From Obrimoposthia wandeli (Eukaryota), in contig CDROCS010000410.1 of NCBI GenBank assembly GCA_977020255.1, forward strand, positions 558,001-622,000: DNA of 64,000 nucleotides, written 5' to 3'. Made by a program: the position numbers and the translations under genes. This document shows, piece after piece, positions 3,416 through 22,589 of this stretch (the first letter of the stretch is position 1; every line of letters starts with the position of its first letter). The notes under the pieces are model-generated. The model did no database searches. It saw nothing but the letters and a program-made list of their open reading frames with translations, and had not been told where the DNA came from.

Positions 3416-3492
3416 CTATCGCATACATGTAACTATCTAATATAAATAGCTATCGCATGTAAAAATGACCAGCCCTAAAGGCTAAATATTGT

Positions 3493-3605: not shown

Positions 3606-4337
3606 TTAAACCAGTTCCCCTGCGCCTTTAACGGATGCCTCACTATTTTCGACCAGCATCGCTGTGGCGGTTTTTTTCAATTTTTCCCACTCCGCATCAT
3701 CAACTAAAATACCATCATACCAAGTATCGCGTTGCGCACTATTTAGCGATGACGATCTAATGTGTTTGGTGTAACCAGCTGAGTAACCAGCAATATCGAA
3801 ATTTTTCACTGATAATTGAATGGTCATATCATGTAATGTTCGCCCAGCTAAATCGAGATGATCGGATAAAAACAATTCTGGTGACACACACCCTTGATTC
3901 AAAATATACAGGGTATTTTGTGGTGACGAGCCATTATTCCACTGTGCTTTACAGGCCAAGCCTTTAGCGGCTAGCTTCACCAGTTCGTTATACGCCAACC
4001 AACGGTTGTGACAATTCTTCAATTCAATCGTCAGATGCTTTTTACCAACCATTTTTTCAAGCGCGTAATCAATCACTACCGGCAAGTGACAAGCTAAACT
4101 GCAGCCATGTAGATCAACGACTAAGCCACCGTCATTGGTAATGAAAATATCAACAGGGGAATCTTTTTCTGCCGTTAAAAATCGCGCCGCATTGTTAAAA
4201 TGGCCAATACCATTTAACCCCACGATCTGTAAACCAGCGACCATATTGGCAATCACATCGGCTTCACCGCAGCTACGACGCATTCCCAAAAAGGCTTTAT
4301 TCACCACCGAGACTAATTCATTATGTGAAACGATCAT
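3606..4337 (-). CDS. DUF3726-family protein (possible distant Ldh_2/AllD-like oxidoreductase fold)
   Basis: N-terminus S-x-NE...KA..G....G.A...A.......GL.G matches the DUF3726 pattern; C-terminal GILVDDAEWEKL; start overlaps the stop of the upstream ORF by 4 nt. Confidence 0.7.
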   Translation of the reverse strand: MIVSHNELVSVVNKAFLGMRRSCGEADVIANMVAGLQIVGLNGIGHFNNAARFLTAEKDSPVDIFITNDGGLVVDLHGCSLACHLPVVIDYALEKMVGKKHLTIELKNCHNRWLAYNELVKLAAKGLACKAQWNNGSSPQNTLYILNQGCVSPELFLSDHLDLAGRTLHDMTIQLSVKNFDIAGYSAGYTKHIRSSSLNSAQRDTWYDGILVDDAEWEKLKKTATAMLVENSEASVKGAGELV

Positions 4338-6058
4338 GATGCTTCTCCTTCTGCTACAGCTTGATTTAATGCATTACTCGGTAATAACGGAAACAACCAC
4401 TCCCCATCATGGATCTCGTTAAGTAACGGCGCGCCTTGGAAAAAGGTTACACGTACCCAACGTTCTGAACGAGGGTCAAATTTTGTTGCCCCCAACACCG
4501 CTAATTTACAACGTAATAAGTGCATCGGTAACGATTTTTTATGTAATACATTCATCTGAATTTCACCCATCTGCTTATTACCCAACGTCCAAACACGCCG
4601 TGAAATAGAACGATATTGAGGGTGTAACACTAAAAATTCAGCCAATTGCATATTAGGTTTACATATCAAGAGCGCATGATAAAGGCGATTGGCTTGACGG
4701 CCAATATCCAATGGTAATTCACGATCTTCACCCGGCTCTTCACCGCGAATGCCTAGACGAGGTTCTTCTTTGTCTTGTGAGCGATACCAGAACCAATAGT
4801 TATTTTCTGGTCGCTTAAAATCAGTCTCAATAGCCCAACGATAACTACTTTCCAATACCGCGATTAAATCTTCAATACGTTTACCGCTGGGTAGACTTAA
4901 ACTCTCATCACAATTCATTTTGGTTTCATAGCTATCCACCAGTGCAGGGTAAAGTTCCATCAAGCACGAAAGCAGTATTTCTTGAGTTTCCAGACTATAA
5001 CGACTGGTATATTCCACTAATTCAGACCATGTTTGACTCTGTATCAACAAAGTTTCGAGGTCACTCAACAGATCATGTAATTCTTCTATAGCGGTATTAT
5101 TAAGCGTGTTTTGATCTGCATTAATCGTGATAATTTGCTCTAAATGACAAAGCCCTTTATGTAATAAATACTGCAACGGCACTAGTTTTTTCATTTCCAC
5201 CGCTGTATTCAACACATCCGTCAACGCAGATTCACGTGACGATAACCATTGATCCACAACACAAGGATGATTAATTAAGTACGGTGCCATGCCCAATCCT
5301 GTCGCGTTACCAATACCCAAGTAGCGTTGTAAGCCAAGATCTAAACTAACCGCTTTATCTCCACCTTGCTGCTGGGCTAAATAGTGCACCCAGTCGAGGC
5401 TGAATTCACGCAAGATATATACAGCACACATTTGCGCGCTAAATGATTGATTAAAGTCTGCAGTGGTTTCTAGCCAGCCAAAATCAGCAATACCAAATTT
5501 ACCATTACCGTAAACGGCGGTAGTACGTAGGATGTAACCGACTTCTGCGAGTTCTTTAGCATTCGGCTGCTGCCCTTTAGCAAGGTGTGAAACTAAATGT
5601 TCAAACACTCGCACACTCTTGTTTGCTCTTGCTAATACCAATACTTTATTTGGATTTCGTCCAGCTTCTTGCAACGGTACATTGGCACGTAAGCGACTCA
5701 ATAACTCAACATCAACATCGCCATAAACCAGCGCGAACGTCACGTCCCACTTTTCGGCAATAACGCGATCATTACGATCTTCATCGGCGATCTCATCACA
5801 AAAAATAACTAAGTGATAAACATGATTCAGCGTTGTAAGCTTGTAAATCACATGACCAAAGCCTTGTGCTGACAACTGCCAATCGTGCTTAGTCACTTGC
5901 CATTTTTGTTGTGCCATTTTACGAATTAAAGAGCGCACAAAGCTAATCCGATTTTGATGCATTGCGCCAAGTCTTTCTGGCGCCATAACGGTTACAGGAT
6001 CACGCATATAAGTGCCACCGCAAGTTGAAGGACGAGCATCCATATTATTAACTTCCAT
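4334..6058 (-). CDS. Conserved hypothetical protein, 574 aa (likely start at 6043)
   Basis: Long intact ORF within an operon; motif-like blocks RTTAVYGNGKFG, GIGNATGLGMAP, WYRSQDKEEPRLG, GATKFDPRSERW; no recognisable cofactor motif. Confidence 0.85.
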   Translation of the reverse strand: MEVNNMDARPSTCGGTYMRDPVTVMAPERLGAMHQNRISFVRSLIRKMAQQKWQVTKHDWQLSAQGFGHVIYKLTTLNHVYHLVIFCDEIADEDRNDRVIAEKWDVTFALVYGDVDVELLSRLRANVPLQEAGRNPNKVLVLARANKSVRVFEHLVSHLAKGQQPNAKELAEVGYILRTTAVYGNGKFGIADFGWLETTADFNQSFSAQMCAVYILREFSLDWVHYLAQQQGGDKAVSLDLGLQRYLGIGNATGLGMAPYLINHPCVVDQWLSSRESALTDVLNTAVEMKKLVPLQYLLHKGLCHLEQIITINADQNTLNNTAIEELHDLLSDLETLLIQSQTWSELVEYTSRYSLETQEILLSCLMELYPALVDSYETKMNCDESLSLPSGKRIEDLIAVLESSYRWAIETDFKRPENNYWFWYRSQDKEEPRLGIRGEEPGEDRELPLDIGRQANRLYHALLICKPNMQLAEFLVLHPQYRSISRRVWTLGNKQMGEIQMNVLHKKSLPMHLLRCKLAVLGATKFDPRSERWVRVTFFQGAPLLNEIHDGEWLFPLLPSNALNQAVAEGEAS

Positions 6059-6119
6059 TGTAAATATAAGAATTTTAATTAAGCGGCTTGCTAACCGCCC
6101 TGCTTCACATTGTTTTCGT

Positions 6120-6157
6120 TATTAACGGTCAGTCATTCAATCGACTGACCGTTAATA
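6120..6157. other. Perfect 15-bp intercistronic hairpin without a U-tract
   Basis: TATTAACGGTCAGTC/GACTGACCGTTAATA around an 8-nt loop, between the BCCT gene and the 574-aa gene. Confidence 0.7.
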
Positions 6158-6161
6158 CTTG

Positions 6162-7790
6162 CTATAAACCTTGATCTTTCGCCATCTGTATCGCGATTTG
6201 TGGTGCGTTCCAGAGCGAGGGTAATAAGATTAAAGAAACCGGTACTGCAGTAATAACAATGAACGATTGCAGTGCGGATATCCCCCCCGATCCCAGTGAA
6301 ATAAGCACCAACGCAGTGATCCCCATCACCACACCCCAGAATGTACGAATAAAGGCATTTGGTTCTTGTTCACCACTGATCACTACACTAATTGTGTAAG
6401 TCATCGAGTCACCCGTCGTAACGATAAAGATCGTCGTCAAGATAAGAAACAGTACCGAAGTCACCATCGGAAATGGCAGTTGCGTAGTCACAGCAAGTAG
6501 CGCACCAGGTAAATTAAAACCTTCAAATGCGGAGCTGACTGAACCCGGTTCTGCGATTTCAAATGCTAAACCCGAACCACCGACAATCGTGAACCAAAAG
6601 CACGTGGTTAGCGGCGCAATAATACTGATTGTAGAGACGAGCTGACGAATCGTTCTACCACGTGAAATACGTGCAATAAAGATTGCCATCATCGGGCCAT
6701 AACCCAAGAACCAGCCCCAGAAGAATACTGTCCACCAGCTCAACCAACCTTCATCACCACGATATGTTGCCATGGGAATGAAATTATCTACCATGCTACC
6801 CACACCTTGGATATAGCCATTAAAGATAAAGTTAGTTGGACCAAAAATAAGAATGTAAGCCATCAATAAACACGCTAAAACAACGTTGTAACGGCTAAGC
6901 ATTTGCATGCCTCGATTTAAGCCACTTAACGCCGAAATGGTATATAACGTGATAGCAAATAACACGATGATAAGCTGCGTAGTAAACCCGTCTGGAATAT
7001 CAAACAAAACGTTTAATGCGTAGCTCACCTGTAAACCAAGGAAACCAATCGGACCAATAGTCCCTGCGGCAACAGCAACGATACAACACGCATCAATCAA
7101 TGCGCCTGTGTGCCCCGTTAATACTCGTTTCCCAAACACTGGGTAAAGTAAGATACGTGGTTTAAGCGGTAACCCTTTGTCATAATGCAGATGCATGACA
7201 ACGATAGAAGTAAGACTACCGACAATAGCCCAAGCCAGAAAACCCCAATGCATGAACGACTGCGATAAAGCATTAACAGCGGTTTGATGAACATCTTCTT
7301 GCGCACCATACAGAGGCGGTGGATTAACAAAATGCGCTATCGGCTCTGCAGCAGCCCAAAACACACCACCACCCGCAAGTAATGTACAAAAGATAATAGC
7401 CATCCAACGAAAGCCATCCATTTCAGGTTTAGGCAGTGCACCTAAAACAACTTTACCCGTACGACCAGCGGCTAACGCGATGCCAATCAAAAAAGTTAAT
7501 AGCAACAAGACTTGCCAATAAGGACCAAAGAATTTGACCGCCCATGAGAACCCTGTATTAACAAGACTTGATAACAACGCTTCATCGTATAACGCTAAGA
7601 GTACAAACAAGGCAAGAAAGCTGCCGCTGTACCAAAAAGCGGGATTACTAAAACCCAATTTATCCGCTGTAGAATTACTATCACTTACTGCGCTATTGCT
7701 TGCTAAATTTGAAGAGCTTGATGCGCTAGCGGTATTACTACCATCGCTATTTAAGCTCGCCGCTTTCGCGCTTTTGGTTAAATCTGACAT
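6162..7790 (-). CDS. BCCT-family (betaine/carnitine/choline) transporter
   Basis: GGVFWAAAEP, HWGFLAWAI, WTVFFWGWFLGYGP and FIARISRGRTIR motifs; about 12 hydrophobic segments; Ser-rich N-terminal tail. Confidence 0.93.
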   Translation of the reverse strand: MSDLTKSAKAASLNSDGSNTASASSSSNLASNSAVSDSNSTADKLGFSNPAFWYSGSFLALFVLLALYDEALLSSLVNTGFSWAVKFFGPYWQVLLLLTFLIGIALAAGRTGKVVLGALPKPEMDGFRWMAIIFCTLLAGGGVFWAAAEPIAHFVNPPPLYGAQEDVHQTAVNALSQSFMHWGFLAWAIVGSLTSIVVMHLHYDKGLPLKPRILLYPVFGKRVLTGHTGALIDACCIVAVAAGTIGPIGFLGLQVSYALNVLFDIPDGFTTQLIIVLFAITLYTISALSGLNRGMQMLSRYNVVLACLLMAYILIFGPTNFIFNGYIQGVGSMVDNFIPMATYRGDEGWLSWWTVFFWGWFLGYGPMMAIFIARISRGRTIRQLVSTISIIAPLTTCFWFTIVGGSGLAFEIAEPGSVSSAFEGFNLPGALLAVTTQLPFPMVTSVLFLILTTIFIVTTGDSMTYTISVVISGEQEPNAFIRTFWGVVMGITALVLISLGSGGISALQSFIVITAVPVSLILLPSLWNAPQIAIQMAKDQGL

Positions 7791-7889
7791 GCTCTGACTC
7801 CAGAGGTATGCTTTGCAACTGCAAAGGTGTATTTACGTCAGCCCTCTCGATTTATAATAATGGACTGACGTTCTATGTGTCGTAACGAC

Positions 7890-8879
7890 TTACGAAATAG
7901 GCTCTAATCCTTGCTTTAAAAAGTTAAACCAATTTTCGCCTAATACTTGCCCCGCTTCAGATTCTGAAAATCCGTAGCGCATTAATCCGTTATAAATATT
8001 CTCCATACCTGCGCTTCCGCAGAACCAAGGCAATGAATCAGGCCACCCTGAATTATTTGCCGACCCTTCACCATAATCCATCGCTTTAGACCAGCGACCA
8101 TTACGCATCCATTCCAATACAGCCTGTGGTTGGTTAAGACATAAATCACTACCAATCCCCAAGTGTTCAACACCCACCATATCAGCTGTTTTCGCAACCA
8201 TCTGACAAAAGTCATCTAAGCTACACTGGCTGCCATTGGGTAAGTGAAATGGATATAAACTGAACCCTAACAATCCACCACGTGCTGCTAATGACTTAAT
8301 CACCGTATCCGATTTATTACGCAATGCTTCAAACGCAAACGTCGGGTTAGCATGACTAATACAAATAGGACGTGAAGACAAATCAATCGCTTCAAGTGTA
8401 GATCGCTCTGCGCTATGTGACATATCGATAATCATGCCAACACGGTTCATCTCTGCAATTGCTTGTTTACCAAAACGGGTAATACCATTATCATTTTTCT
8501 CATAACACCCTGTTGCCAGTAGGCTTTGGTTGTTATAAGTCAGCTGCATAATAAGTAAACCTTGTTGGCGCATTACTTCAATTAAACCGATTTCATCATC
8601 AATCGATGAGCAATTTTGTGCGCCAAAGAAAATACCCACTTTACCGAGTGCTTTGGCCTTTTCGATATCTGCAACTGAGTGAATAGGCATGATCAAGTCA
8701 GCATTTTGTTCAAATCTTAAATTCCACTCCGCAAAACGGCTTAACGTTTCACGCGCTGTTTCGTGATAAACAATCGTTGCGTGAACAGCGGTGATGCCAC
8801 TGTTTTTCAATGTCTGGAAGTACTCTCGATCCCAATTGCAATACTGCAATCCATCAATCACAATCCTTTGGCTATACAT
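7890..8879 (-). CDS. M19 membrane-dipeptidase-family amidohydrolase with a degenerate metal site
   Basis: IVIDG, AEMNRVGMIIDMSH, ISHAN, RNKSD and GIGSD motifs. Confidence 0.9.
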   Translation of the reverse strand: MYSQRIVIDGLQYCNWDREYFQTLKNSGITAVHATIVYHETARETLSRFAEWNLRFEQNADLIMPIHSVADIEKAKALGKVGIFFGAQNCSSIDDEIGLIEVMRQQGLLIMQLTYNNQSLLATGCYEKNDNGITRFGKQAIAEMNRVGMIIDMSHSAERSTLEAIDLSSRPICISHANPTFAFEALRNKSDTVIKSLAARGGLLGFSLYPFHLPNGSQCSLDDFCQMVAKTADMVGVEHLGIGSDLCLNQPQAVLEWMRNGRWSKAMDYGEGSANNSGWPDSLPWFCGSAGMENIYNGLMRYGFSESEAGQVLGENWFNFLKQGLEPIS

Positions 8880-8934
8880 ACCGACTCCTAATTATTCATC
8901 TGACTTTAATTCACTTAATCATGCTGAAAACCGC

Positions 8935-10398
8935 TTAATAAGCGCGTTGATAAGCCGTTTTCACTACTGTATAGAATTCTTTTGCATACTGACCTTGTTC
9001 ACGAGGGCCAAAGCTTGATTCTTTACGACCACCAAATGGCACATGGTAATCCGTACCTGCCGTTGGTAAGTTCACCATCACACAACCGGTTTGCGCTTGT
9101 TGCTTAAACAGTGCACTTGTACGTAAGCTCTGGGTGATGATGCCGCTGGTTAAACCAAAGCGGGTATCGTTAGTTGTTGCAATCGCTTCTTCTAAATCAG
9201 CCACACGAATAACACTCGCCATCGGTGCAAAAACTTCTTCTTGATTCACTGACCAATCATTTTTAGTATTAATAAACAGTGTCGGTGACATATAGAAACC
9301 TTCATGTTCTAGGTTTAAACGCTCACCACCAAATGCCAGTTCACCACCACTTTGACGTGCCGTATCAATCCAATCGAAGTTCGCATCTAGCTGCTTACCA
9401 TCAACAACCGGGCCCATAAATACACCGTCTTTAAGAGCATGACCCACTTTCAGTTCGCTCATACGTTTAATTAGCGCTTCAACGTATGCATCATGAATAC
9501 CATCCATAACAACTAGGCGAGAAGATGCTGTACATTTTTGCCCAGCGCCCGAGAATGAACCAGCAATCGTCGCTTCAACCGCAATATTAATGTCTGCATC
9601 ATCGGCAACGATTAAGGCATTTTTACTGCCCATTTCTAACTGGCAACGTACAAAGTTAGGCGCTGTAGCAGCTGCAATTTTACGGCCTGTATCAACAGAA
9701 CCGGTAAAACTAACCCCGTTCACTTCGGTTGAATTAATTAATACATTACCCACTTCCGAACCACTACCCAGTACCAGGTTAAATGTACCTGCTGGTAGGC
9801 CTTGACGATGAATAATCTCTGTTAATGCAACTGCACTTGCAGGTGTTAGATTTGCAGGCTTCCAGATAACGCTGTTACCAAAGGCTAAAGCTGGTGCAAT
9901 TTTCCATGCTGCTGTTGCAGTAGGGAAATTCCACGGCGAGATAATAGCGACAACACCTACAGCTTCACGTGTTACTTCAACTGTCACACCAGGTCGAACA
10001 GATGCAGCACTATCACCGATTTGGCGTAGCACTTCAGCAGCAAAATACTGGAAAAATTGACCCGCACGATAAATCTCGCCACGACCTTCTAGGAATGGTT
10101 TACCTTCTTCACTTGATAGTAAGCGACCTAGTTCATCACAACGTGCTATTAGCTCATCACCGATACCTTGTAGTACAGCTTGCTTTTGTTCTAGCGGCGT
10201 CTTTTCCCATGTTGGCTGTGCATGTTTTGCTGCCGAGATAGCCTGATGAACTTGCGCCGTACTCGCTTGAGCAAAGTTACCTAAATTTTGGCTGATATCA
10301 GACGGATTGATATTGGCGACAGTACTTACACCTGCTTGCCATTCGCCGCCAATATAAAGTGAGCTTTCTGCTTGAATGCGTTGTGTTTGAGTTGTCAT
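8935..10398 (-). CDS. NAD(P)+-dependent aldehyde dehydrogenase
   Basis: PWNFP, FTGS, catalytic Glu in LEMGSKN, catalytic Cys in GQKCTAS, EEVFAP, PFGGRKES. Confidence 0.96.
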   Translation of the reverse strand: MTTQTQRIQAESSLYIGGEWQAGVSTVANINPSDISQNLGNFAQASTAQVHQAISAAKHAQPTWEKTPLEQKQAVLQGIGDELIARCDELGRLLSSEEGKPFLEGRGEIYRAGQFFQYFAAEVLRQIGDSAASVRPGVTVEVTREAVGVVAIISPWNFPTATAAWKIAPALAFGNSVIWKPANLTPASAVALTEIIHRQGLPAGTFNLVLGSGSEVGNVLINSTEVNGVSFTGSVDTGRKIAAATAPNFVRCQLEMGSKNALIVADDADINIAVEATIAGSFSGAGQKCTASSRLVVMDGIHDAYVEALIKRMSELKVGHALKDGVFMGPVVDGKQLDANFDWIDTARQSGGELAFGGERLNLEHEGFYMSPTLFINTKNDWSVNQEEVFAPMASVIRVADLEEAIATTNDTRFGLTSGIITQSLRTSALFKQQAQTGCVMVNLPTAGTDYHVPFGGRKESSFGPREQGQYAKEFYTVVKTAYQRAY

Positions 10399-10566
10399 AC
10401 GACTTTCCTTGTTTCGGCGATACGTTAAGTTAGATTGAATTCGTTAAAATAAATTAGTTATAAATAGGTTCGCTATAAATAGATCATATTCGTTAGTATA
10501 GTTCGGGTTTATACCGTTAGAAATATTGGCTTTATGTTGCTTGGATTGAAGTTATAACAATGCTGA

Positions 10567-10953
10567 TTATTCACTAACCGCGGCATAGACAACAAACTCA
10601 ACTAGCATCTCTTCACGTGCGAGTCCAGCGACGACCATTGCAGCGCGATTTGGATAAGGCGCATCAAAATATTCTGCATATACCTTATTAACAGTGGCGA
10701 GATATTCGCGGTCTGTCACATAGATTAATACCTGCAGCACTGAATTAAGCGATTCACCTGCGCATTCCAGTGTGTGGACTAAATTGTCAAAGGTTTGGCG
10801 AGTTTGTGCTTCAATGCCACCAGCAACAACAGCGCCCGTTTGATCAATTGGGATCTGCGCTGTATAGAGTGTGCCATTATTTACGATAGCCCATTCAAGT
10901 GGCGCTTTAGACGCAAATAATTCAGTTTTTACCGGGTAGTGTTGAGTTGTCAT
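10567..10953 (-). CDS. RidA/YjgF family imine deaminase
   Basis: QIP, EAQTRQTFDNL, PYPNRAA (catalytic Arg present), LVEF. Start MTTQH at 10953 preferred over 10986. Confidence 0.9.
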   Translation of the reverse strand: MTTQHYPVKTELFASKAPLEWAIVNNGTLYTAQIPIDQTGAVVAGGIEAQTRQTFDNLVHTLECAGESLNSVLQVLIYVTDREYLATVNKVYAEYFDAPYPNRAAMVVAGLAREEMLVEFVVYAAVSE

Positions 10954-11042
10954 GTTTACATCCATTTTGTAACTGCTTTGTTTCAATGTTGTAAATATTG
11001 CCAGTTGACGTTTGATAAATCTAACGGTAAATTCTGTACGAT

Positions 11043-11061
11043 TGATAAGAAAAACTTATCA
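11043..11061. promoter_or_regulatory. Candidate LysR operator
   Basis: Perfect palindrome TGATAAG-AAAAA-CTTATCA containing T-N11-A (11046/11058), between the divergent ridA and lysR genes. Confidence 0.7.
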
Positions 11062-11107
11062 CTGGACAAAAGCGTGATCGCAGCATACTTTTTATGAAGC
11101 CATAATT

Positions 11108-11155
11108 TCATGACGACACTCTTTATCAAAATCATGACGATACTCTTTATCAAAA
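11108..11155 (+). repeat. 24-bp tandem duplication with 1 mismatch
   Basis: TCATGACGACACTCTTTATCAAAA followed by TCATGACGATACTCTTTATCAAAA. Confidence 0.9.
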
Positions 11156-11192
11156 AACGTTTTACCACAAAATACCTCATAGGCTATTAAAT

Positions 11193-12077
11193 ATGGATAT
11201 TAAAATACAGCAGTTACGACATTTCGTTTTAGTCGTTGAAGAAGGTGGATTCCGCGCGGCATCAAGCAGAGCCAACCGTTCCCAGGCGGCACTATCAACC
11301 TCGATCAAAGAACTTGAGCGCACCTTGGAACAACCGTTGTTTGAACCTGGTAACAAGTCAACACTCACGCCTTTCGGCCAACTCTGTTTACCAAAAGTCA
11401 GCCAATTCCTGCATATTTATAAGTCATTAGATAATGACTTACGGGCTGCAGCGGCTGGTCAACAGGGTCGTGTACGTATTGCTAGCGTACCTTCCGTAGC
11501 GGCAAAGCTCATTCCCAATGTACTAGGACGGTTTTGTCTGGAGTACCCTAATGTCGAGGTCAGCTTAATTGATGATAACGCAGCAGGCGTGGAAGCCAGA
11601 TTATTGTCAGGTGAAGTTGATTTAGCGCTGGGGAATTGTGCCAATTTAGATGCGGCAGCCATCGATTTTACGCCACTGATTGCAGATCCAATTGGCGTGG
11701 TGTGCTTAAAGGATAATCCTATAGCGAGTAATATGAACGGTATTGAATGGCGGGCATTATTGGAACAACCATTTATTAATAATGGCACCTGCACGCTGCT
11801 AGAACCAACTGCGGCAAGGGTTTTAATTGATCAGGCGCTCTACTCTGTAGAGAATATAACGTCTTTATTTGCAGTACTGAAACTGGGTATTGGCATAACC
11901 ACACTGCCTAAACTGGCCTTCCCCAGTAATGAAACTGATTTAGTGTGGTTACCCCTTATTGACCCCCTGCTAGAACGAAAAATGGGTATTTTTCGACTGG
12001 CAGAACATACTATTTCTCCTCAAGCCCAGGCTTTTTATGATTTGTGTATTAAACACCTCATCTGCTCCGATGAGTGA
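11193..12077 (+). CDS. LysR-family regulator, divergent from the catabolic operon
   Basis: N-terminal HTH (LRHF...GFRAAS..ANRSQAALSTSIKELE) and a substrate-binding domain. Confidence 0.95.
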   Translation: MDIKIQQLRHFVLVVEEGGFRAASSRANRSQAALSTSIKELERTLEQPLFEPGNKSTLTPFGQLCLPKVSQFLHIYKSLDNDLRAAAAGQQGRVRIASVPSVAAKLIPNVLGRFCLEYPNVEVSLIDDNAAGVEARLLSGEVDLALGNCANLDAAAIDFTPLIADPIGVVCLKDNPIASNMNGIEWRALLEQPFINNGTCTLLEPTAARVLIDQALYSVENITSLFAVLKLGIGITTLPKLAFPSNETDLVWLPLIDPLLERKMGIFRLAEHTISPQAQAFYDLCIKHLICSDE

Positions 12078-12158
12078 ATAGTCGATAAATCCATCGATTT
12101 ATTGCTCTAGGTGCTATTCCAGATAATACGCTAAATAATCAGAATATTATGCTAGTCA

Positions 12159-12623
12159 TTACTCAACAATTAAAACATTACCATCGACGGCAACGATGGT
12201 AACCCGTTGGCCAATATCAATAGATTCAACCGTCGCGGTTTCACTTAAGCGCGCATTCCAGTTAATACCTGAATGACGAACCTTGCCACCGTTAGTAGTC
12301 ACAGCTTCGCTGACAGGTACTTTTTGACCAATCATATCGCTACTGGTGTCAGCTACCAACTTATTACCCTGGAAATGCTTAAGCGGTTGCCATAATAATA
12401 ACGCCGCGGCGCCTGACAATAGACTCACCGATAATACTTCAAACTCCCACCCTTGGATGATGCCGGCACTTACCAGCAATCCAGAGAGCAGACAACCAAG
12501 ACCAAAAAACAGTAATGGTCCGCTTAACCCAGTCACACTCAGTTCAACAATCAAGGCAATCGCGCCAATAACATAAAGTAATTGATCATGATTGTTCTGT
12601 AAGTAGTCAATTAATGTATCCAT
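12159..12623 (-). CDS. NfeD-like (YbbJ) membrane protein
   Basis: Three N-terminal TM helices, GKVRHSGINWNA, V.IVAVDGNVLIVE OB-fold end; paired with an SPFH gene. Confidence 0.88.
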   Translation of the reverse strand: MDTLIDYLQNNHDQLLYVIGAIALIVELSVTGLSGPLLFFGLGCLLSGLLVSAGIIQGWEFEVLSVSLLSGAAALLLWQPLKHFQGNKLVADTSSDMIGQKVPVSEAVTTNGGKVRHSGINWNARLSETATVESIDIGQRVTIVAVDGNVLIVE

Positions 12624-12655
12624 TTAATAAACTCCATTGATGGACGACCAAGCCA

Positions 12656-13630
12656 CTATTCAGATAACTTTAGTGCACTTGATACTGCGATTGCTTGAGC
12701 AACCGTATTACCAATATTATCGCCCGTTTTACCATCGGTTAAAATCACTGAACCTTCAGATGCAATCGCTTTATGCGCAGCAATGGTATCTTGTGCCAGT
12801 GTTAAACGCACCGCTTGCTGACCTTCAGCAGTAATAGCGGCAGCACCAATGACATTTAGCGCGTTAGAATCTGCATCAGCAACCAAGCGAATGGCTTCGG
12901 CTTTACCCGTCGCTTCTAATATTTGTGATTCCTTACTTGCTTCAGCTGCCAGTACTTGCTCTGCTTTAGCACCTTCGGCATCTAAAACCCTTGCTTGTTT
13001 CAAACCTTCAGCTTTCGTGATTGCCGCAGTTTTAACACCTTCAGCAGTCAAGATCACCGAACGTTTTTCACGTTCTGCTGCCATTTGTTTTTCCATGTCT
13101 TCTTTAATGGAAATAGGCGGCGTAATATCTTTGATTTCGTAACGTGTTACCTGTACGCCCCAAGGTTGAGTCGCCTCTGTCATCGACGCTAAGATAGACG
13201 CATTAATGTTATCTCGGTTTTGGAAACATTGGTCAAGCTCCATTGAACCAATGGCATTACGCATGGTCGTTGTTGCTAGTTGCACTACCGCTAATTTATA
13301 GTCAGTAATGTTATTCGTCGCCGCTGCAGCATCAATCACTTTCATGAATAAAATACCGTCGAGTTCTAAAGTAATGTTGTCTTTAGTAATCGCTAATTGT
13401 GAAGAAATATCTAACGATTGTTCTTTTAAATTACGATCGGCAGCAACGCGCTGGATAAAAGGCACGATAAAATTAAGTCCAGCTTGTAATGTGCCACTGT
13501 AACGTCCGAAGGTATAAATAACGTAGCCGCGGTTTTGCGGGATGAATAATATGCTTCTTTGAATGGTAAAAATGACGGCAATAGCAATCCAAAGCCACGG
13601 GGTTAACAGTATATCAATTGCAGTATTCAT
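12656..13630 (-). CDS. qmcA: SPFH/band-7 stomatin-like protein (QmcA/paraslipin type)
   Basis: FGRYSGTLQAGLNF, ITKDN, PWGVQVTRYEIKDI, QMAAEREKR. Confidence 0.88.
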   Translation of the reverse strand: MNTAIDILLTPWLWIAIAVIFTIQRSILFIPQNRGYVIYTFGRYSGTLQAGLNFIVPFIQRVAADRNLKEQSLDISSQLAITKDNITLELDGILFMKVIDAAAATNNITDYKLAVVQLATTTMRNAIGSMELDQCFQNRDNINASILASMTEATQPWGVQVTRYEIKDITPPISIKEDMEKQMAAEREKRSVILTAEGVKTAAITKAEGLKQARVLDAEGAKAEQVLAAEASKESQILEATGKAEAIRLVADADSNALNVIGAAAITAEGQQAVRLTLAQDTIAAHKAIASEGSVILTDGKTGDNIGNTVAQAIAVSSALKLSE

Positions 13631-13958
13631 AGATGCGTTCCTTAATGATTAAAATAAAAAATACTTTTTAAGTAATGGCTTACGTCGAATTTTAATAAAT
13701 ATTTAGTACTAAACATAGAATAAATGATTACCGATGAGGAGACAGCCTTTATATTAAATTATCCTTGTTGTTCTGATGTTTACCTCAAAAGTGTGACTTA
13801 AAACCATAATATGCTTTATATTATAGGTGTAACTGCTCCGACCTTTAGTGGTATACGGTCGTTTTATTGGTTATACGATAGTTTAATATTGAGTCGTTTT
13901 GATCTGCGCAGTAGTATAGGGACTCTATTTTTCCGCACATCATTGTTTAGGAAGTATC

Positions 13959-14870
13959 ATGTCATTTGTACGAGGCTGTTTAGCGTTTGTATTTTGGTTT
14001 ATAAACTTATTGTTTTGGGTCATTCCAATCATTGTTTTAAGCCCTATAAAATTACTGCCGATTAAAAAACTACAATCAACTTGTTCTGCATTGTTAGTTT
14101 TCTGCGCCAGTAGTTGGATCCGCGGCAACGTGATAATCGAACGCCTTATACACCCCGTGAATATTCACTTTCACAGTGCTGATATCGAACTGTCTGAAAA
14201 AGAATGGTATATGGTGCTTGCTAACCATCAATCTTGGGTTGATATCTTAATATTGCAACGTGTATTAAATAAAAAGATCCCCTTCTTAAAATTCTTCTTA
14301 AAAAAAGAACTTATTTTTGTGCCTTTTTTGGGCATGGCTTGGTGGGCATTAGATTTCCCATTCATGCGTCGTTATACCAGCGCGCAGTTAAAGAAAAACC
14401 CGAAATTACGCGGCAAAGATATCGAGGTAACACGCAAAGCCTGTGCTAAATTCAAATCAAGCCCAGTAAGTGTGATGAATTTTGTCGAAGGTACGCGCTT
14501 AACCACTGCAAAGCATGAAAAACAGAACTCACCGTTTAAGCACCTATTAAAACCCAAATCAGGTGGACTCGCATTTGCACTTTCTGCATTGGGCGATCAC
14601 ATTCATAAAATCGTTGATGTCTCGATTTATTACTCAGGCCAGACACCCAGCTTTTGGCAATATCTGTGTGGTGAAGTAAAAGATGTGCATGTCCATATCC
14701 GTGTATCCGATATTGATGACAAGATGCGTGGCGATTACCAAAAAGACCGCGCGTTTAAAATTGGCTTTCAGCAACACCTGAATGATATTTGGCTAGAAAA
14801 AGACGCAATTCTAGAATCAATGGCACAAAGCGATAAGACGAACGCAGGTAACACAACACCGCAGAAGTAA
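13959..14870 (+). CDS. yihG: Acyltransferase (PlsC/YihG family)
   Basis: NHQSWVD, FFLKKEL, FPFMRR, FVEGTR, LLKPKSGG. Confidence 0.9.
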   Translation: MSFVRGCLAFVFWFINLLFWVIPIIVLSPIKLLPIKKLQSTCSALLVFCASSWIRGNVIIERLIHPVNIHFHSADIELSEKEWYMVLANHQSWVDILILQRVLNKKIPFLKFFLKKELIFVPFLGMAWWALDFPFMRRYTSAQLKKNPKLRGKDIEVTRKACAKFKSSPVSVMNFVEGTRLTTAKHEKQNSPFKHLLKPKSGGLAFALSALGDHIHKIVDVSIYYSGQTPSFWQYLCGEVKDVHVHIRVSDIDDKMRGDYQKDRAFKIGFQQHLNDIWLEKDAILESMAQSDKTNAGNTTPQK

Positions 14871-14891
14871 ATTCATATCACGTATATCACT

Positions 14892-14937
14892 AAAACCGCC
14901 TCATTTGTTTAGCAAAATAAATGAGGCGGTTTTTTTT
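14892..14937 (+). terminator. Rho-independent terminator
   Basis: AAAACCGCCTCATTT/AAATGAGGCGGTTTT followed by a T run. Confidence 0.85.
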
Positions 14938-15154
14938 CGCCTCGACTTTACCGTTAACCTTGCTGTGAACTTTATGAACTAAATACACGCAATGTGATTA
15001 ATTACCATTATTTACACTTTCCACTCCGTCACAACAATAACCGAAACATTAATTTAACATCACGCCCCATAAGCGTTAACCATAACAACCATGTAAAAGC
15101 GCTAGCCATTAACATCAAATGTTAAATTCAACTCTTCAACAATGAACACAAGGA

Positions 15155-16144
15155 ATGGAAACCATGCTAAAGCAATTTAGAAAATGTGTAACCTCATCAC
15201 TGATTGTCGCCAGTATTGCCACTTTATCATCTGCCGCTTGGGCTGCTGATTTAGAAAAAATCCACTTTATCGTACCAGGTGGTGCAGGCGGTGGTTGGGA
15301 CATGACAGCCCGCGGGACTGGCGATGTGTTAATGAAGGCCGACTTAGTTAACAAGGTGTCTTATCAAAACCTGTCTGGTGGCGGTGGCGGTAAAGCGATT
15401 GCGCACATGATTGAGACTGCGGCTCGTCAGCAAGACACTTTAATGGTTAACTCGACACCGATTGTGATCCGTTCTTTGACTGGTATTTTCCCACAGTCGT
15501 TCCGCGATCTAACACCCGTTGCAACAACGATTGCCGATTATGGCGCAATTGTCGTGGCAGCAGATTCGAAATTTGAAAATTGGTCACAAGTTGTTACCGC
15601 ATTTAAAGAAAACCCACGAAAAGTAAAAATTGCTGGCGGCTCTGCGCGCGGTAGTATGGATCACCTGATCGCAGCAGCGGCATTTAAAGGTGAAGGTTTT
15701 GATGCTCGTAAAGTACGCTACATCGCTTATGACGCTGGCGGTAAAGCAATGGCAGCGGTATTGTCAGGTGAAACACCACTCCTATCAACGGGTCTAGGTG
15801 AAGTACTGGAAATGTCTAAAAGTGGTCAAGTACGTATTCTTGCAATCACAGCACCAGAACGTCTAGCCGCAGCGCCAAATGTGCCAACGCTTACCGAGAT
15901 GGGTAACGACACTGTATTTGCTAACTGGCGCGGATTCTTTGCTTCACCGGGTATCAGTGACGCGAAAGTCGCCGAGTGGAACAAAGTATTAAGTGAGATG
16001 TATAAGACTGACCAATGGGCTACAGTACGTGACCGTAACGGTTGGATTGATAACTACAAAGCAGATAAAGACTTTTATGCATTCTTAGAACAACAAGAAG
16101 AGCAAATGGGTGCCTTGATGCGTGAGTTAGGTTTCCTAAAATAA
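15155..16144 (+). CDS. tctC: Tripartite tricarboxylate transporter substrate-binding protein
   Basis: Signal peptide; PGGAGGGWD, NLSGGGGG, GGSARGSMDHL, NWRG. Confidence 0.92.
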   Translation: METMLKQFRKCVTSSLIVASIATLSSAAWAADLEKIHFIVPGGAGGGWDMTARGTGDVLMKADLVNKVSYQNLSGGGGGKAIAHMIETAARQQDTLMVNSTPIVIRSLTGIFPQSFRDLTPVATTIADYGAIVVAADSKFENWSQVVTAFKENPRKVKIAGGSARGSMDHLIAAAAFKGEGFDARKVRYIAYDAGGKAMAAVLSGETPLLSTGLGEVLEMSKSGQVRILAITAPERLAAAPNVPTLTEMGNDTVFANWRGFFASPGISDAKVAEWNKVLSEMYKTDQWATVRDRNGWIDNYKADKDFYAFLEQQEEQMGALMRELGFLK

Positions 16145-16165
16145 ACTGACTCATCACCATGATAT

Positions 16166-16198
16166 AGCCACAGTAATAACTCACTGTGGCTTTCTTTT
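16166..16198 (+). terminator. Intercistronic hairpin after tctC (attenuator or mRNA stabiliser)
   Basis: AGCCACAGT/ACTGTGGCT followed by TTCTTTT. Confidence 0.6.
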
Positions 16199-16212
16199 AA
16201 ATCGGAGCATCC

Positions 16213-16728
16213 ATGCAATCAACACCTTTACCACGCTTAAACCGAGATCAAGTCAGTGGATTAATATTCCTCCTGGTTTGCTTAATTTACGGATATCAAG
16301 CTACCCAAATTCAGCTTTTCCCTGGTGACGAATACGAGGCCTTTACGGCACGTACTTTACCCTATTTACTTACCGCCGGTGGCATCATCATGTCACTGCT
16401 GCTTATTGTCATGTCACCCGCGACAAAGTCTAGTGCTAACGTTTGTGAGCAACAAGGTGCTTGCGAAAATACCAATGAAAACAACTTAGATTGGCGTCTA
16501 CTCGGCGCATTCGTTGCCTTAATGACAGCTTATGGGGTCGGACTCACTTGGCTTGGATTTGTATTGGCCACCAGCTTATTCTTATTAGTCGGTTTTTGGC
16601 TACTTGGCGAGCGCCGTAAAGCGGTATTGTTTGGTGCCTCTTTCCCTTTTGTAACTGTGTTTTGGTTACTACTGACCAAAGTTCTGGATATTTATCTTGA
16701 ACCTGGTTACCTCTTTTTAAGCTTGTAG
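16213..16728 (+). CDS. tctB: Tripartite tricarboxylate transporter small subunit
   Basis: Four TM helices between tctC and tctA; LGF..AT and LDIYLEPG end. Confidence 0.88.
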   Translation: MQSTPLPRLNRDQVSGLIFLLVCLIYGYQATQIQLFPGDEYEAFTARTLPYLLTAGGIIMSLLLIVMSPATKSSANVCEQQGACENTNENNLDWRLLGAFVALMTAYGVGLTWLGFVLATSLFLLVGFWLLGERRKAVLFGASFPFVTVFWLLLTKVLDIYLEPGYLFLSL

Positions 16729-16738
16729 GACGATAATT

Positions 16739-18274
16739 ATGTTAGATGGAATTTTAGCAGGCTTATCCACAGCAATCATGCCAACCAATTTAATGATGGT
16801 GATGGTCGGCTGTTTTGTTGGTACTTTTATTGGTATGTTGCCCGGTCTTGGACCGATTTCCGCGATTGCGTTAATGATCCCCATTACTTATGGTTTAGAC
16901 CCTTCTTCGGGCATGATCTTAATGGCTGGCGTTTACTATGGTGCTATTTTTGGTGGTTCAACATCATCAATCCTGATCAATGCGCCCGGTTGTTCATCCA
17001 CCGTGGTCACCGCGTTTGATGGTTATCCGTTAGCCAAGAAAGGCCAAGCTGGTAAAGCCTTAGCACTTGCTGCCTACGCCTCATTTACTGGCGGTACCTT
17101 GTCTGCGATCATGTTATTAATCGCCGCCCCTGCACTGGCCAGAGTATCATTAAGTTTTCAATCATCAGATTACTTTGCTCTGATGCTAGTTGGTCTGTCT
17201 GCCGTTGCTGCATTTGCGGGTAAAGGTCAGGTATTAAAAGCCTGGATGATGACTATTTTTGGTTTAATGTTATCTACCGTCGGTATTGATAAAGGCATTG
17301 GTGTTGAACGTTTCACCTTTGGCTTAACTGATTTGATGGATGGTTTTAGTTTCTTACTATTAGCGATGGCGACTTTTGCCCTCGGTGAAATATTATTCAG
17401 TATTTTAAAACCCGAACCAGATACCTCAGCTGAAGAAAACAGTGCCCTATCTGAAATCGGTAGCATGAAGGTCACCAAAGAAGAATTTAAAGAAGTGGCT
17501 CCCGTGGCAATACGTTCTTCTATTCTGGGTTTCTTTGTCGGGGTATTACCCGGTGCTGGCGCAACGATTGCCGCATTCCTAAGTTATGGCTTAGAGCGTA
17601 ATCTTGCGCCTAAAGATAAACGTGATGAATTTGGTAAAGGCAGTATCCGTGGTCTAGTAGCCCCTGAAGCTGCTAACAACGCTGCATCAAGTGGTTCATT
17701 TGTACCGCTATTAACCTTAGGTATTCCAGGGTCTGGTACTACAGCAATTATGCTGGGGGCGATGATCTCTTACGGTATCCAACCTGGTCCGCGTTTGTTT
17801 GTTGATAACCCAGAAATTTTCTGGTCTGTGATCATCTCAATGTACTTCGGTAACCTAGTATTGATGGTGCTGAACCTGCCGCTGATCCCGTATATTGCCA
17901 AACTGCTAGCAGTGCCAAGAACGGTATTACTGCCGATGATTATCTTCTTCTCAATCACTGGTGTGTATCTGGTTTCGTTTAATACTGTTGATGTGTTTAT
18001 CATGATCTTAGTAGCCGTGATAGCGATATTCCTCAGGCTCGCGACCTTCCCCTTAGCGCCATTATTACTAGGCTTTATTCTGGGTGGCTTGATGGAAGAA
18101 AATCTACGCCGTTCATTAATGATCAGCGATGGTGAGCTAAGTTTCTTGTGGGAACGTCCTATAACACTGACGTTCACGGTTATTTCTGCCTTAGTACTGG
18201 CGGCACCAATATTGCTAACTGCATTTAACCGTCACCGCGCAAAGAAAACTGTATTTGTAGATGATTGTGATTAA
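16739..18274 (+). CDS. tctA: Tripartite tricarboxylate transporter large subunit
   Basis: GMLPGLG, YYGAIFGGS, PEAANNA, LTLGIPGS. Confidence 0.95.
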   Translation: MLDGILAGLSTAIMPTNLMMVMVGCFVGTFIGMLPGLGPISAIALMIPITYGLDPSSGMILMAGVYYGAIFGGSTSSILINAPGCSSTVVTAFDGYPLAKKGQAGKALALAAYASFTGGTLSAIMLLIAAPALARVSLSFQSSDYFALMLVGLSAVAAFAGKGQVLKAWMMTIFGLMLSTVGIDKGIGVERFTFGLTDLMDGFSFLLLAMATFALGEILFSILKPEPDTSAEENSALSEIGSMKVTKEEFKEVAPVAIRSSILGFFVGVLPGAGATIAAFLSYGLERNLAPKDKRDEFGKGSIRGLVAPEAANNAASSGSFVPLLTLGIPGSGTTAIMLGAMISYGIQPGPRLFVDNPEIFWSVIISMYFGNLVLMVLNLPLIPYIAKLLAVPRTVLLPMIIFFSITGVYLVSFNTVDVFIMILVAVIAIFLRLATFPLAPLLLGFILGGLMEENLRRSLMISDGELSFLWERPITLTFTVISALVLAAPILLTAFNRHRAKKTVFVDDCD

Positions 18275-18326
18275 TCACGAAAACCGTCATCGTAGGTGTC
18301 ATTAAAACTATAAATAATGTGGAAAC

Positions 18327-18356
18327 AAAAACAGCGCTCAAGGCGCTGTTTTTTTT
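18327..18356. terminator. Bidirectional rho-independent terminator
   Basis: AAAAACAGCGC/GCGCTGTTTTTTTT between the convergent tctA and response-regulator genes. Confidence 0.85.
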
Positions 18357-18418
18357 ATCTCATTATTAGCAATTCACAATAATCAATAATCAATAATCAC
18401 AGTTTGCATGAACAAGCA

Positions 18419-19108
18419 TTATTTAACTTGTTTTTTATAGGTTCTTTCTGGGCGGCCTACTGTGCCATAGTTTAAATCAGCTACCAGTTCACCAGTACTA
18501 ATCAAGTGTTCCAAATAACGCCTTGCAGTGGTGCGACTCGCGCCAATCAATGCACCAGCGTTATCCGCAGTAATATCTGCATGTTCAGCAAACAAAGCAC
18601 GCACTTTATCCAAGGTCACACTATCAATACCTTTCGGTAAACGTGATGCTGCAGGGCTTTTGACGCTAACTGAAATCATGGCATCAACCATATTTTGATC
18701 AACATCATCAAGATTAACAAATTGATTTTTCTGTTTAAGGTACTTATTTAATGATTCTTCTAAACGCGCAAAAATCACCGGTTTTAAAATGTAATCAACT
18801 ACCCCACCACGCATAGCTGCTTGTAGTGTTTCCGCATCACGATCAGCAGTAATTAAGATCACGTCACAAGCATGCTGCTGTTGACGTAAATCACGTAGAA
18901 TATCCAAGCCATTACCATCAGGTAAATACACATCTAACAAGATCAAATCGGGCGTAAGCACATCCAGTAACACTTCAGCTTCAGCTTTAGTCGTCGCAAT
19001 ACCAATGACGTCCAAGCCATCAATTTTCATTAGATTGCGGCGGTGGATCTCAGCGATACCCACATCATCCTCAATGATTAATACTTTAATCGAATTAGCT
19101 GATGTCAT
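18419..19108 (-). CDS. CitB/DpiA-family response regulator
   Basis: IIEDD, LLDVYLPDGNG, SRTTARRYLE, YGTVGRPER. ATG at 19108 has an AAGGA SD (ORF track starts at 19129). Confidence 0.92.
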   Translation of the reverse strand: MTSANSIKVLIIEDDVGIAEIHRRNLMKIDGLDVIGIATTKAEAEVLLDVLTPDLILLDVYLPDGNGLDILRDLRQQQHACDVILITADRDAETLQAAMRGGVVDYILKPVIFARLEESLNKYLKQKNQFVNLDDVDQNMVDAMISVSVKSPAASRLPKGIDSVTLDKVRALFAEHADITADNAGALIGASRTTARRYLEHLISTGELVADLNYGTVGRPERTYKKQVK

Positions 19109-21059: not shown

Positions 21060-22589
21060 ATGAATAAAAGAAACACTCAGATCATTAATGAAGAAGTTTC
21101 ATTTGATGTGCAAGATGAACTCGTTTCTACCACCGATATTCGGGGGGTCATTACGTACGCGAATACGACGTTCTGCCAAATCGCAGGTTTTGAACTTGAT
21201 GAATTAGTCGGTGAAAATCATAATATTGTCCGCCACCCTGATATGCCGATGGCAGCATTTAAAGACCTTTGGACCAACCTACAAGCCGGTAAACCTTGGC
21301 GCGGCGCGGTTAAAAATCGCTGTAAAGATGGCCGCTATTACTGGGTTGATGCTTTTGTTACCCCAATCCATGAACAAGGCCAATTAGTGGGCTATCAATC
21401 AGTTCGAAAAAAACTAGCCCTTGCAGACAAACAAAGAGCAGAATCTGCCTACGCAACCATCAATAACGGTAAAAGTTTATTTCAGTGGTACCAGCGTCCG
21501 GTATTAAAACCACTGGCATTTTCTATCATCAGCGCCTTGATCTTGTTTTTCGGCCAGAGCATACCTTATTTAAACATCGCATTACCCTTGCTGCCTTTCA
21601 TCATATTCTATAACGAGTTGATCACAGTGCCACGCTACTTTGCCAGCTTGAAACAACGTTATGATAGTGTCTCACGCTATGTATTCTCGGGCTTGAAGCC
21701 ACAAGGTATTGTCGATTTTCAACTGAAGATTGAAGAAGGCAAGATCCAAACGATTCTAGGCCGCGTGGTTGATAGCAGTCGCGCACTGGAGATGGGGGCA
21801 GATAACCTCACCTCTGCAGCGCATCGAGCGAAAGCAGGTGTCGAACAAGAAACCGCTGAACTGCATCAAGTCGCCACTGCAATAACAGAAATGGCATCAA
21901 CGATTGCTGAGGTATCGCAAAATACACTATTAACATCAGAGAAAGTACAGCTCGCCCACGACGATTGTGAAAGTGCCACCAAAGCCATGTCAGAGACCAT
22001 GTTACAAGTGGGTCAACTCGCCACGGATGTTGCACAGTCTGCCGCATCAGCAAGTATGCTATCGGATGAAGCTCAGAAAATCAGCGTTATCATGTTAGAG
22101 ATACGTGGCATTGCCGACCAAACTAACTTGTTGGCACTGAATGCTGCCATTGAAGCTGCGCGTGCTGGTGAACATGGACGTGGATTTTCGGTTGTTGCCG
22201 ATGAAGTGAGGGCATTATCGACTCGTAGTCATAAAGCCACAGAGCAAATTCAAACCTCGATTAACGAGATCCAACAAACGTTAGTAAAATGGTCCACAAC
22301 CATGCAACAAGGTAAAGAGTCTGCCGAATTGTGTGTCGGGGAATCGCAGAAAACGCAAACCATGATGCAAAATGTATATGGTGCTATCACCGATATTTCC
22401 GATCTTGCGATCCAAATATCCAGTGCATCAGAAGAACAGAATATGGTGTCGCAAGAAATCAGCCGTAATATCGTCAATATCAGTGATGCTTCACAGCACA
22501 ATTTACAACAAACAGAGTTAGTCGAGCGTGAAGCCAATGATATTAATACCAACTCTAAATCGCTAGCAGCCTTGGGCTTAACCTTTTAA
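21060..22589 (+). CDS. aer: PAS-containing methyl-accepting chemotaxis protein (aerotaxis receptor)
   Basis: [60 protein letters not shown]. Confidence 0.9.

Follow-up and report, generated by a model that had tools for sequence, protein, structure and literature searches.

A probable homarine operon in Moritella and the predicted folds of its HomA and HomB proteins

The window and the published homarine operon

Which compound is degraded by a compact run of catabolic genes around a betaine-type carrier, and which enzyme could take the first step when no familiar oxygenase is encoded? This question is raised by positions 3606-12077 of a stretch of 64,000 nucleotides (nt) filed under Obrimoposthia wandeli (assembly GCA_977020255.1, contig CDROCS010000410.1, positions 558,001 to 622,000, forward strand; hereafter the window). 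A first-pass annotation had proposed a self-contained operon for the catabolism of an N-methylated, probably homarine-like, betaine. We conclude that the locus is very probably the Moritella counterpart of homABCDER together with homT, an operon for uptake and catabolism of homarine (N-methylpicolinate) under control of the regulator HomR. The two unknown proteins of the cluster, HomB and HomA, have their best matches in Moritella (91-95% identity), and the DNA of the window is therefore attributed to a Moritella.

Open reading frames (ORFs) were taken from a six-frame list and protein families from Pfam and NCBIfam scans. The layout described earlier is reproduced exactly: a LysR-type gene stands divergent from six minus-strand genes which encode, in order of transcription, a RidA protein, an aldehyde dehydrogenase (ALDH), an M19-like amidohydrolase, a BCCT-family carrier, a protein of 574 amino acids (aa) and a DUF3726 protein. 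These are the probable homR, homE (RidA), homD, homC, homT, homB and homA. The regulator gene homR (11193-12077, plus strand) encodes 294 aa with the Pfam domains HTH_1 and LysR_substrate and has no NCBIfam equivalog at cut-off. On the minus strand, homE (10567-10965) codes for a RidA/YjgF-family protein, a probable enamine/imine deaminase (Ribonuc_L-PSP, 83 bits). The ORF list gives it as 10986-10567 with a TTG start (139 aa), but the ATG at 10965 (approximately 132 aa) is most likely the start, since the orthologues of Aliivibrio and Vibrio measure 127-132 aa. It is followed on the same strand by homD (10398-8935; NAD(P)+ ALDH of 487 aa, Aldedh 492 bits), homC (8879-7890; M19-like amidohydrolase of 329 aa with a non-canonical metal site, Peptidase_M19 234 bits), homT (7790-6162; carrier of 542 aa, BCCT 491 bits), homB (6058-4334; 1,725 nt, without Pfam or NCBIfam family) and homA (4337-3606; 732 nt, 243 aa, with an N-terminal DUF3726 match of 60 bits). 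The last two genes share positions 4334-4337, which confirms the 4-nt overlap reported before.

An operon giving N-methylglutamate from homarine in marine bacteria, to which the first-pass annotation had pointed, has indeed been published (Ferrer-Gonzalez et al., Nat Microbiol 2026, PMC13236597). There, transcriptomes and gene knockouts of Cobetia sp. OBi1 and Ruegeria pomeroyi DSS-3 were used to define homABCDER. Homarine induces the hom genes in both, growth on homarine requires homB, homC, homD and homR, and homarine is converted to N-methylglutamate and onward to glutamate, the labelled intermediates being C7H9NO5, C6H9NO4 and C6H9NO3. HomC is a predicted peptidase, HomD an aldehyde dehydrogenase and homR the regulator gene, while homE is a variable auxiliary gene (kept in 93% of the gammaproteobacterial operons, missing from 94% of the alphaproteobacterial ones). 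The homA gene (~700 nt) and the homB gene (~1,700 nt) are adjacent in 97.7% of 11,755 genomes. The Cobetia operon includes an internal glycine-betaine-type transporter gene, homT, deletion of which slows growth on homarine. Hom genes are reported for Vibrionales, SAR116 and Rhodobacterales; a Vibrio isolate (PS01) that has the operon but no mgd genes grows on homarine, and Vibrionales homB transcripts track the compound (all PMC13236597).

The window agrees with this description in gene content, gene sizes and homA-homB adjacency, as had been suspected from the number and families of the genes, and probably also in the lineage pattern of homE. The 732-nt DUF3726 gene and the overlapping 1,725-nt gene correspond to homA and homB, and M19, Aldedh and LysR genes occur in one unit. 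Moritella, Aliivibrio, Vibrio and Caballeronia all have RidA, which tblastn did not detect in 59 mostly Rhodobacterales loci (see below); if RidA is HomE, this would agree with the published distribution of homE. In comparison to the operons of Cobetia and R. pomeroyi the same seven functional types are found, the betaine-type carrier is internal as in Cobetia, and a probable homE is present. The host, a Moritella, is different, and so is the gene order: the window transcribes homE first and homA last, whereas the Cobetia locus tags run homE, homA, homB, homT, homC, homD, homR (PMC13236597). As the window holds exactly the published gene set, the proposal of a dedicated betaine-type, homarine-like catabolic operon is supported. 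Ectoine, proline betaine, carnitine and glycine betaine were rejected as substrates; none of their signature families (chosen from general knowledge) appears among the seven proteins in Pfam or NCBIfam.

Conservation of the gene set and alternative readings

The identical seven-gene layout is found, with different flanking genes, in Aliivibrio salmonicida LFI1238 and Vibrio harveyi. The soil betaproteobacterium Caballeronia contains the same seven families with RidA in last position. Shorter versions are seen in an uncultured relative (ALDH-M19-BCCT-HomB-DUF3726), on a JGI contig (M19-HomB-DUF3726 plus ALDH) and on a SAR116 contig (M19-HomB-DUF3726; the contig ends ~400 nt upstream of M19). 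Scanning species-representative genomes with HomB of a Phaeobacter plasmid yielded 59 related loci, mostly from Rhodobacterales. R. pomeroyi is not among them, nor is strain DSS-3 among the best 120 clusters (Ruegeria/Roseibium) matched by HomB of Ruegeria atlantica. According to tblastn with the window proteins, nearly all 59 loci show the order homR, homD, homC, (BCCT), homB, at identities of 57-62% for ALDH, 51-57% for M19, 54-60% for BCCT and 36-40% for HomB. In 45 of the 59 an ORF of ~193-217 aa starts 4 nt before the HomB stop, like homA in the window, and in most of the others it starts a few bases past the stop. In Aliivibrio, Vibrio, Caballeronia and most of these loci the LysR gene likewise stands divergent. 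Synteny is thus conserved across three proteobacterial classes, and since the set turns up in many genomes between changing neighbours, the co-occurrence is not due to chance. The first-pass annotation had named failure to co-occur elsewhere as evidence against its proposal, and the opposite is clearly observed; 'self-contained' is a fair description as well.

A maximum-likelihood tree of 80 HomB-family sequences falls into two clades, each with a value of 100 in the Shimodaira-Hasegawa-like approximate likelihood ratio test (SH-aLRT). Clade 1 comprises the window, Vibrionaceae, Caballeronia, SAR116 and all Roseobacter sequences (Ruegeria, Phaeobacter, Leisingera). Clade 2 contains a 28%-identical protein encoded on pSymB of Sinorhizobium meliloti as well as fusion proteins of 850-950 aa.

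The Roseobacter loci carry a reductase gene where gammaproteobacteria have RidA: 42 of the 59 loci have, directly after homA (~10300-11450 of the respective locus), a full-length gene for a DpkA-like oxidoreductase of the Ldh_2 family (E 1e-58 to 1wtj). Some Roseobacter loci have a distant BCCT gene (25-28% identity) next after it. The DpkA-like gene is not named as an operon member in the available part of PMC13236597.

Marine metatranscriptome contigs cover positions 5200-11190 at 90% identity or more (five of the nine at 99% or more), and a single contig of 4,184 nt spans homB, homT and homC. Such coverage would fit transcription of the genes as one unit in situ, though it is not proof.

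Our confidence that this is a true homarine operon is based on the placement of HomB in clade 1, the co-orthologous neighbours, and the published homarine-growing Vibrio isolate and Vibrionales homB transcripts. A number of points weigh against it. Orthology to the published hom genes is read from synteny, phylogeny and the published descriptions, and the identification of RidA with HomE from position and lineage distribution (the family of homE is not named in the available part of PMC13236597). The identity of HomB to the Roseobacter proteins is just 36-40%, and homarine as the substrate in Moritella is suggested by analogy with relatives. No mgd or sox genes for N-methylglutamate occur in the 64-kb window, and the proteins show no O2-activating cofactor domain that could serve the C-C cleavage proposed below. 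Finally, contaminating DNA may be the source of the metatranscriptome contigs, as libraries of this kind can contain it.

It might be argued that in Moritella and Vibrionaceae a hom-family operon acts on another N-alkylated heteroaromatic or cyclic betaine, for instance trigonelline or another pyridinium compound. The low identity of HomB to the Roseobacter proteins could be read in this way, as could the radiation of the family, in which clade 2 sits with ABC transporters, aminotransferases or thiamine pyrophosphate (TPP) enzymes that imply other substrates. In addition, BCCT carriers are often promiscuous and HomT stays under every NCBIfam equivalog cut-off. Nonetheless, the window HomB falls inside the hom-type clade, its listed Vibrio matches are 69-75% identical to it, and the accessory genes are all co-orthologous with those of the Roseobacter loci. 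Together with the growth of a hom-carrying Vibrio isolate on homarine and the Vibrionales homB transcripts that track the compound (PMC13236597), this renders a different substrate unlikely.

An accidental neighbourhood, or a general cluster for detoxification of dipeptides and aldehydes without a dedicated betaine pathway, seems very improbable. M19 proteins are usually annotated as dipeptidases, and RidA and ALDH are generic detoxifying families. Still, HomC is devoid of the canonical dipeptidase metal ligands, homB and homA are translationally coupled or fused, and the set and its order recur across gamma-, beta- and alphaproteobacteria with changing flanks; moreover, published knockouts link hom genes to homarine (PMC13236597). 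We therefore retain the homarine operon as the preferred reading.

The HomA-HomB pair and a proposed route

The absence of a flavin, Rieske or molybdenum oxygenase, pointed out in the first-pass annotation, holds in the Pfam and NCBIfam scans of all seven proteins, and a Pfam search of all 66 members of a HomB alignment (E <= 1) gave no recurring family either. In the published account HomA is said to carry motifs for binding of flavin adenine dinucleotide (FAD), HomA and HomB form a high-confidence AlphaFold heterodimer, and an analogy is drawn with TgnAB, which opens the pyridine ring in Acinetobacter baylyi ADP1 with TgnA as flavin-supplying and TgnB as oxygen-activating component (PMC13236597, including its summary of the Tgn pair). 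We examined both proteins for such folds.

HomA was modelled with AlphaFold2 from 30 homologues at a mean predicted local distance difference test (pLDDT) of 88.7. All 27 Foldseek matches at E <= 0.001 belong to the Ldh_2 family, the top one being the delta1-piperideine-2-carboxylate reductase DpkA. VIA comparison gave Z 15.6-18.4 over 210-223 of the 243 residues (root-mean-square deviation 2.9-3.7 Å) for the 14 best PDB entries; a fifteenth, an AllD chain, scored Z 13.8 over 190 residues, and the next, unrelated match only Z 4.8. At the sequence level the relationship is faint. HomA has no match to PF02615 in Pfam, hhalign aligns it to the Ldh_2 profile at E 0.004 over the first 53 columns only (the N-terminal helices), and its profile weakly matches the C-terminus of YiaK in the PDB (E 0.17), all other matches in PDB searches by single sequence and by profile being at chance level. 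Two histidines are invariant in the Ldh_2 family (His44 and His116 of AllD; PMC3527362), whereas no histidine is conserved across the HomA homologues; invariant here are E7 and a C-terminal tail S-x-x-x-G-A-G. HomA thus shares the three-domain fold of the Ldh_2 family (PF02615: DpkA, AllD, YiaK and the type-2 malate/lactate dehydrogenases), but is ~100 residues shorter and without both the PF02615 match and the conserved histidine pair. Independent support for the relationship may be seen in a paralogous clade-2 cluster (contig P0213), where the partner gene encodes a full-length protein of 350 aa with a faint PF02615 match. DpkA, an N-methyl-amino-acid dehydrogenase of the Ldh_2 family (PF02615), is an imine reductase known to produce N-methyl amino acids (PMC6110843). 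Judged by its model, HomA is best described as a degenerate Ldh_2-fold subunit and would be a trimmed relative of such imine reductases. A flavin-binding fold was not recognisable and the published FAD-binding motifs were not reproduced by Pfam, or by Foldseek and VIA on the AlphaFold2 model.

For HomB the AlphaFold2 model is confident (mean pLDDT 92.8, predicted template modelling score 0.92), and the whole model of more than 400 residues was used in the fold searches. Neither HomB alone nor a 66-member profile has a match in Pfam, NCBIfam or the PDB sequences. Foldseek returned nothing at E <= 0.001, and the best hits of an exhaustive VIA search (urate oxidase and an axonemal protein, Z 5.5) lie below the stated noise level of the tool. 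We do not claim HomB as a relative of the T-fold or of GNAT, as the GNAT-like matches that come next (Z 4-5) are under this level too. HomB belongs to a large family, with 1,201 representative clusters at E <= 0.001. Many arginines are conserved, as is a glycine-rich strand-loop-helix G-x-G-N-x-T-G-x-G at residues 248-256, and there is a single well-conserved histidine; the conserved composition does not look like that of a His-rich metal centre.

Many representatives of the HomB family measure 760-960 aa, and those of 760-816 aa have a C-terminal DUF3726. In one natural fusion (P0123) the C-terminal part is 35% identical to the window HomA over the full HomA length. Such fusions and the translational coupling agree with the published AlphaFold heterodimer and support an obligate HomA-HomB complex. 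In a metagenome-assembled genome labelled Gammaproteobacteria (L033), an 852-aa ORF at 7866-10424 of an otherwise Roseobacter-like hom locus extends over the HomB and HomA positions, which may be a fusion or a frame artefact of ORF calling.

The likeness to the tgn system is in the chemistry. Homarine and trigonelline are isomers, both systems degrade N-methylpyridinium carboxylates, and the C7H9NO5 intermediate with later aldehyde oxidation and hydrolysis looks parallel. The end products differ (N-methylglutamate for hom, succinate semialdehyde and methylamine for tgn), as do the enzymes, since HomA and HomB have no flavin reductase or flavin monooxygenase domain. In place of a Tgn-type pair of flavin reductase and flavin-dependent oxygenase we find an Ldh_2 fold in HomA and no convincing fold match in HomB, so that the predicted folds do not support the TgnAB analogy of PMC13236597.

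Renal dipeptidase, or dehydropeptidase-I, binds its two zinc ions through an HxD motif, a bridging Glu and two His, and hydrolyses N-acyl dehydroamino acids. HomC resembles this M19 enzyme in its Pfam match (234 bits against a cut-off of 26, over the model length) and in the two metal-binding histidines. Unlike in the M19 dipeptidases, the HxD motif and the bridging Glu are replaced: alignments with 2i5g and 3id7 show D-G-L for D-G-H-x-D and G-A-Q for G-A-E, with both S-H histidines kept, so the binuclear zinc set is incomplete. Its closest solved relative, 2i5g (E 7.6e-64), is an uncharacterised 'amidohydrolase' of Pseudomonas aeruginosa and not a dipeptidase. HomC and 2i5g form an M19 subgroup without the dipeptidase HxD motif and bridging Glu, and 2i5g, to which no function was ever assigned, may show the structure of a HomC-type enzyme. 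For HomD the nearest NCBIfam models are alpha-ketoglutaric semialdehyde dehydrogenase (460 bits) and 2,5-dioxovalerate dehydrogenase (447 bits), both under cut-off and both enzymes of C5 2-oxo-semialdehydes. HomE is above the Pfam cut-off and under that of TIGR00004 (75.6 bits against 106); by eye only, the Arg of a P-N-R-A-A motif is at the position of the catalytic Arg105 of RidA.

From the formulae and the chemistry of the families we derive a route, all steps of which are conditional. HomT would import homarine, and a HomA-HomB complex would open the pyridinium ring at C5-C6 to give 2-(N-methylformamido)-5-oxopent-2-enoate, an N-formyl-N-methyl dehydroamino-acid aldehyde. HomD would oxidise this ring-opened aldehyde to the diacid C7H9NO5. 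This N-acyl dehydroamino acid would then be deformylated by HomC to the enamine/imine 2-(methylamino)pentenedioate/2-(methylimino)glutarate (C6H9NO4). From here two branches are conceivable: the imine could be reduced to N-methylglutamate, or RidA (HomE) could hydrolyse it to 2-oxoglutarate and methylamine. The proposed route fits the published intermediates C7H9NO5, C6H9NO4 and C6H9NO3 as well as the product N-methylglutamate. Four waters and one two-electron oxidation are enough to balance the net conversion of homarine to N-methylglutamate and formate, and an oxygenase is therefore not strictly required.

Taken together, our tentative proposal, which we consider possible rather than probable, is that HomA-HomB is a new ring-opening enzyme and not a Tgn-like flavin pair. 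A degenerate Ldh_2-fold subunit, possibly serving in hydride transfer or substrate positioning, would be bound or fused to HomB and have the atypical M19 protein as obligate partner, the module having radiated into at least two clades. As a corollary, RidA in gamma- and betaproteobacteria and the DpkA-like reductase in Roseobacters would be alternative ways of handling the same N-methyl imine. The hydrolysis branch through RidA would also explain growth of the Vibrio isolate PS01 on homarine without mgd genes.

Regulatory spacers, flanking genes and the wider family

The homR-homE intergenic region contains a dyad TGATAAG-N5-CTTATCA of the LysR-box type (11043-11061, minus strand; read from the sequence), a probable HomR operator. 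It is conserved in the corresponding region of A. salmonicida and V. harveyi and partly in Caballeronia. A second TTATCA half site (11008-11021, minus strand; direct repeat family D2), 30 nt downstream of the dyad, is a candidate activation site and is conserved in Aliivibrio and Vibrio. Dyad and second site have the usual arrangement for a LysR-type activator and are predicted to be bound by HomR. Closer to homR, two tandem copies of 24 nt in perfect register (11108-11155; repeat family D1, 96% identity) form a duplication that is specific to Moritella and absent from the aligned Aliivibrio and Vibrio regions. In one contig of run X1, positions 11063-11139 are replaced by 22 other letters, and another contig of this run lacks 30 nt between homE and homD (at 10447), so that Moritella strains differ from each other in these regulatory spacers. 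A terminator-like stem-loop lies ~120 nt after the homA stop (3469-3485, minus strand); it comes from a consensus scan only, which is no evidence of function. The promoter scan gave 15 sites against 20.6 in shuffled sequence, and these sites were given no weight.

The operon is flanked by housekeeping and transport genes that are unrelated to it: on one side DusC and a phosphoribosyltransferase, on the other NfeD/Band7, an acyltransferase, TctCBA and a two-component system. The latter part of the window (15155-20753) holds an ordinary-looking tripartite tricarboxylate transporter (TctC-TctB-TctA) beside a DpiA/DpiB-like response regulator and sCache_3 histidine kinase, followed by a gene for a PAS-domain chemoreceptor (21060-22589). 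In A. salmonicida (FM178379.1, 75-1631 of the locus) two adjacent genes with ADP-ribosyltransferase domains (PF01129/PF03496), likewise unrelated to the operon, lie just beyond homR; the flanks therefore differ between genera.

In clade 2, too, the HomB-family gene has next to it an M19 gene and a gene for a HomA-like or Ldh_2-like partner. ABC transporters are encoded nearby and, depending on the locus, also a regulator (IclR or LacI), an aminotransferase, a TPP enzyme, ALDH and RidA. HomB, a HomA-type partner and M19 may hence be a conserved catalytic core that is reused for other substrates. Two clusters illustrate the range. On pSymB of S. meliloti 1021 (record 389135-406808, 7139-16854 of the locus) an IclR regulator, a HomB-like protein (28% identity) and an M19 amidohydrolase are accompanied by a 251-aa ORF at the HomA position without Pfam match, by an ABC transporter with a SBP_bac_8 binding protein and by a class-III aminotransferase; the plasmid table used lists no genes for this stretch. 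On the P0213 contig (ENA ERZ28763718) the HomB-like gene is preceded by an ABC transporter with an NMT1-type binding protein and by a TPP enzyme, and followed by M19, the 350-aa faint-Ldh_2 protein, ALDH and RidA. In its logic this cluster equals hom, except that the Ldh_2 partner is undegraded.

The kind of operon itself is already known (published in March 2026, with a survey of more than 11,000 genomes), and its presence in a psychrophilic Moritella was to be expected. New here are the Ldh_2 fold of HomA, the HomB model without convincing PDB match, the HomB-HomA fusions, the core common to a second clade, and the swap of RidA for a DpkA-like reductase in Roseobacters. The locus thus adds little by itself, and what remains of interest is how HomA and HomB work as enzymes, together with the sister clade. 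Six genes gain a role in a pathway: relatives of HomA and HomB are labelled 'hypothetical' or 'DUF3726' in public databases, and the other four have only broad family models. If HomA-HomB is indeed a new ring-opening enzyme, clade 2 would degrade still other N-heterocyclic or betaine-like compounds. The main value concerns the first step of a globally important marine flux of nitrogen and carbon, where a presumed pair of flavin reductase and oxygenase shows neither fold. HomA, HomB and the atypical M19 protein define a widespread family, the enzymology of which is now directly testable.

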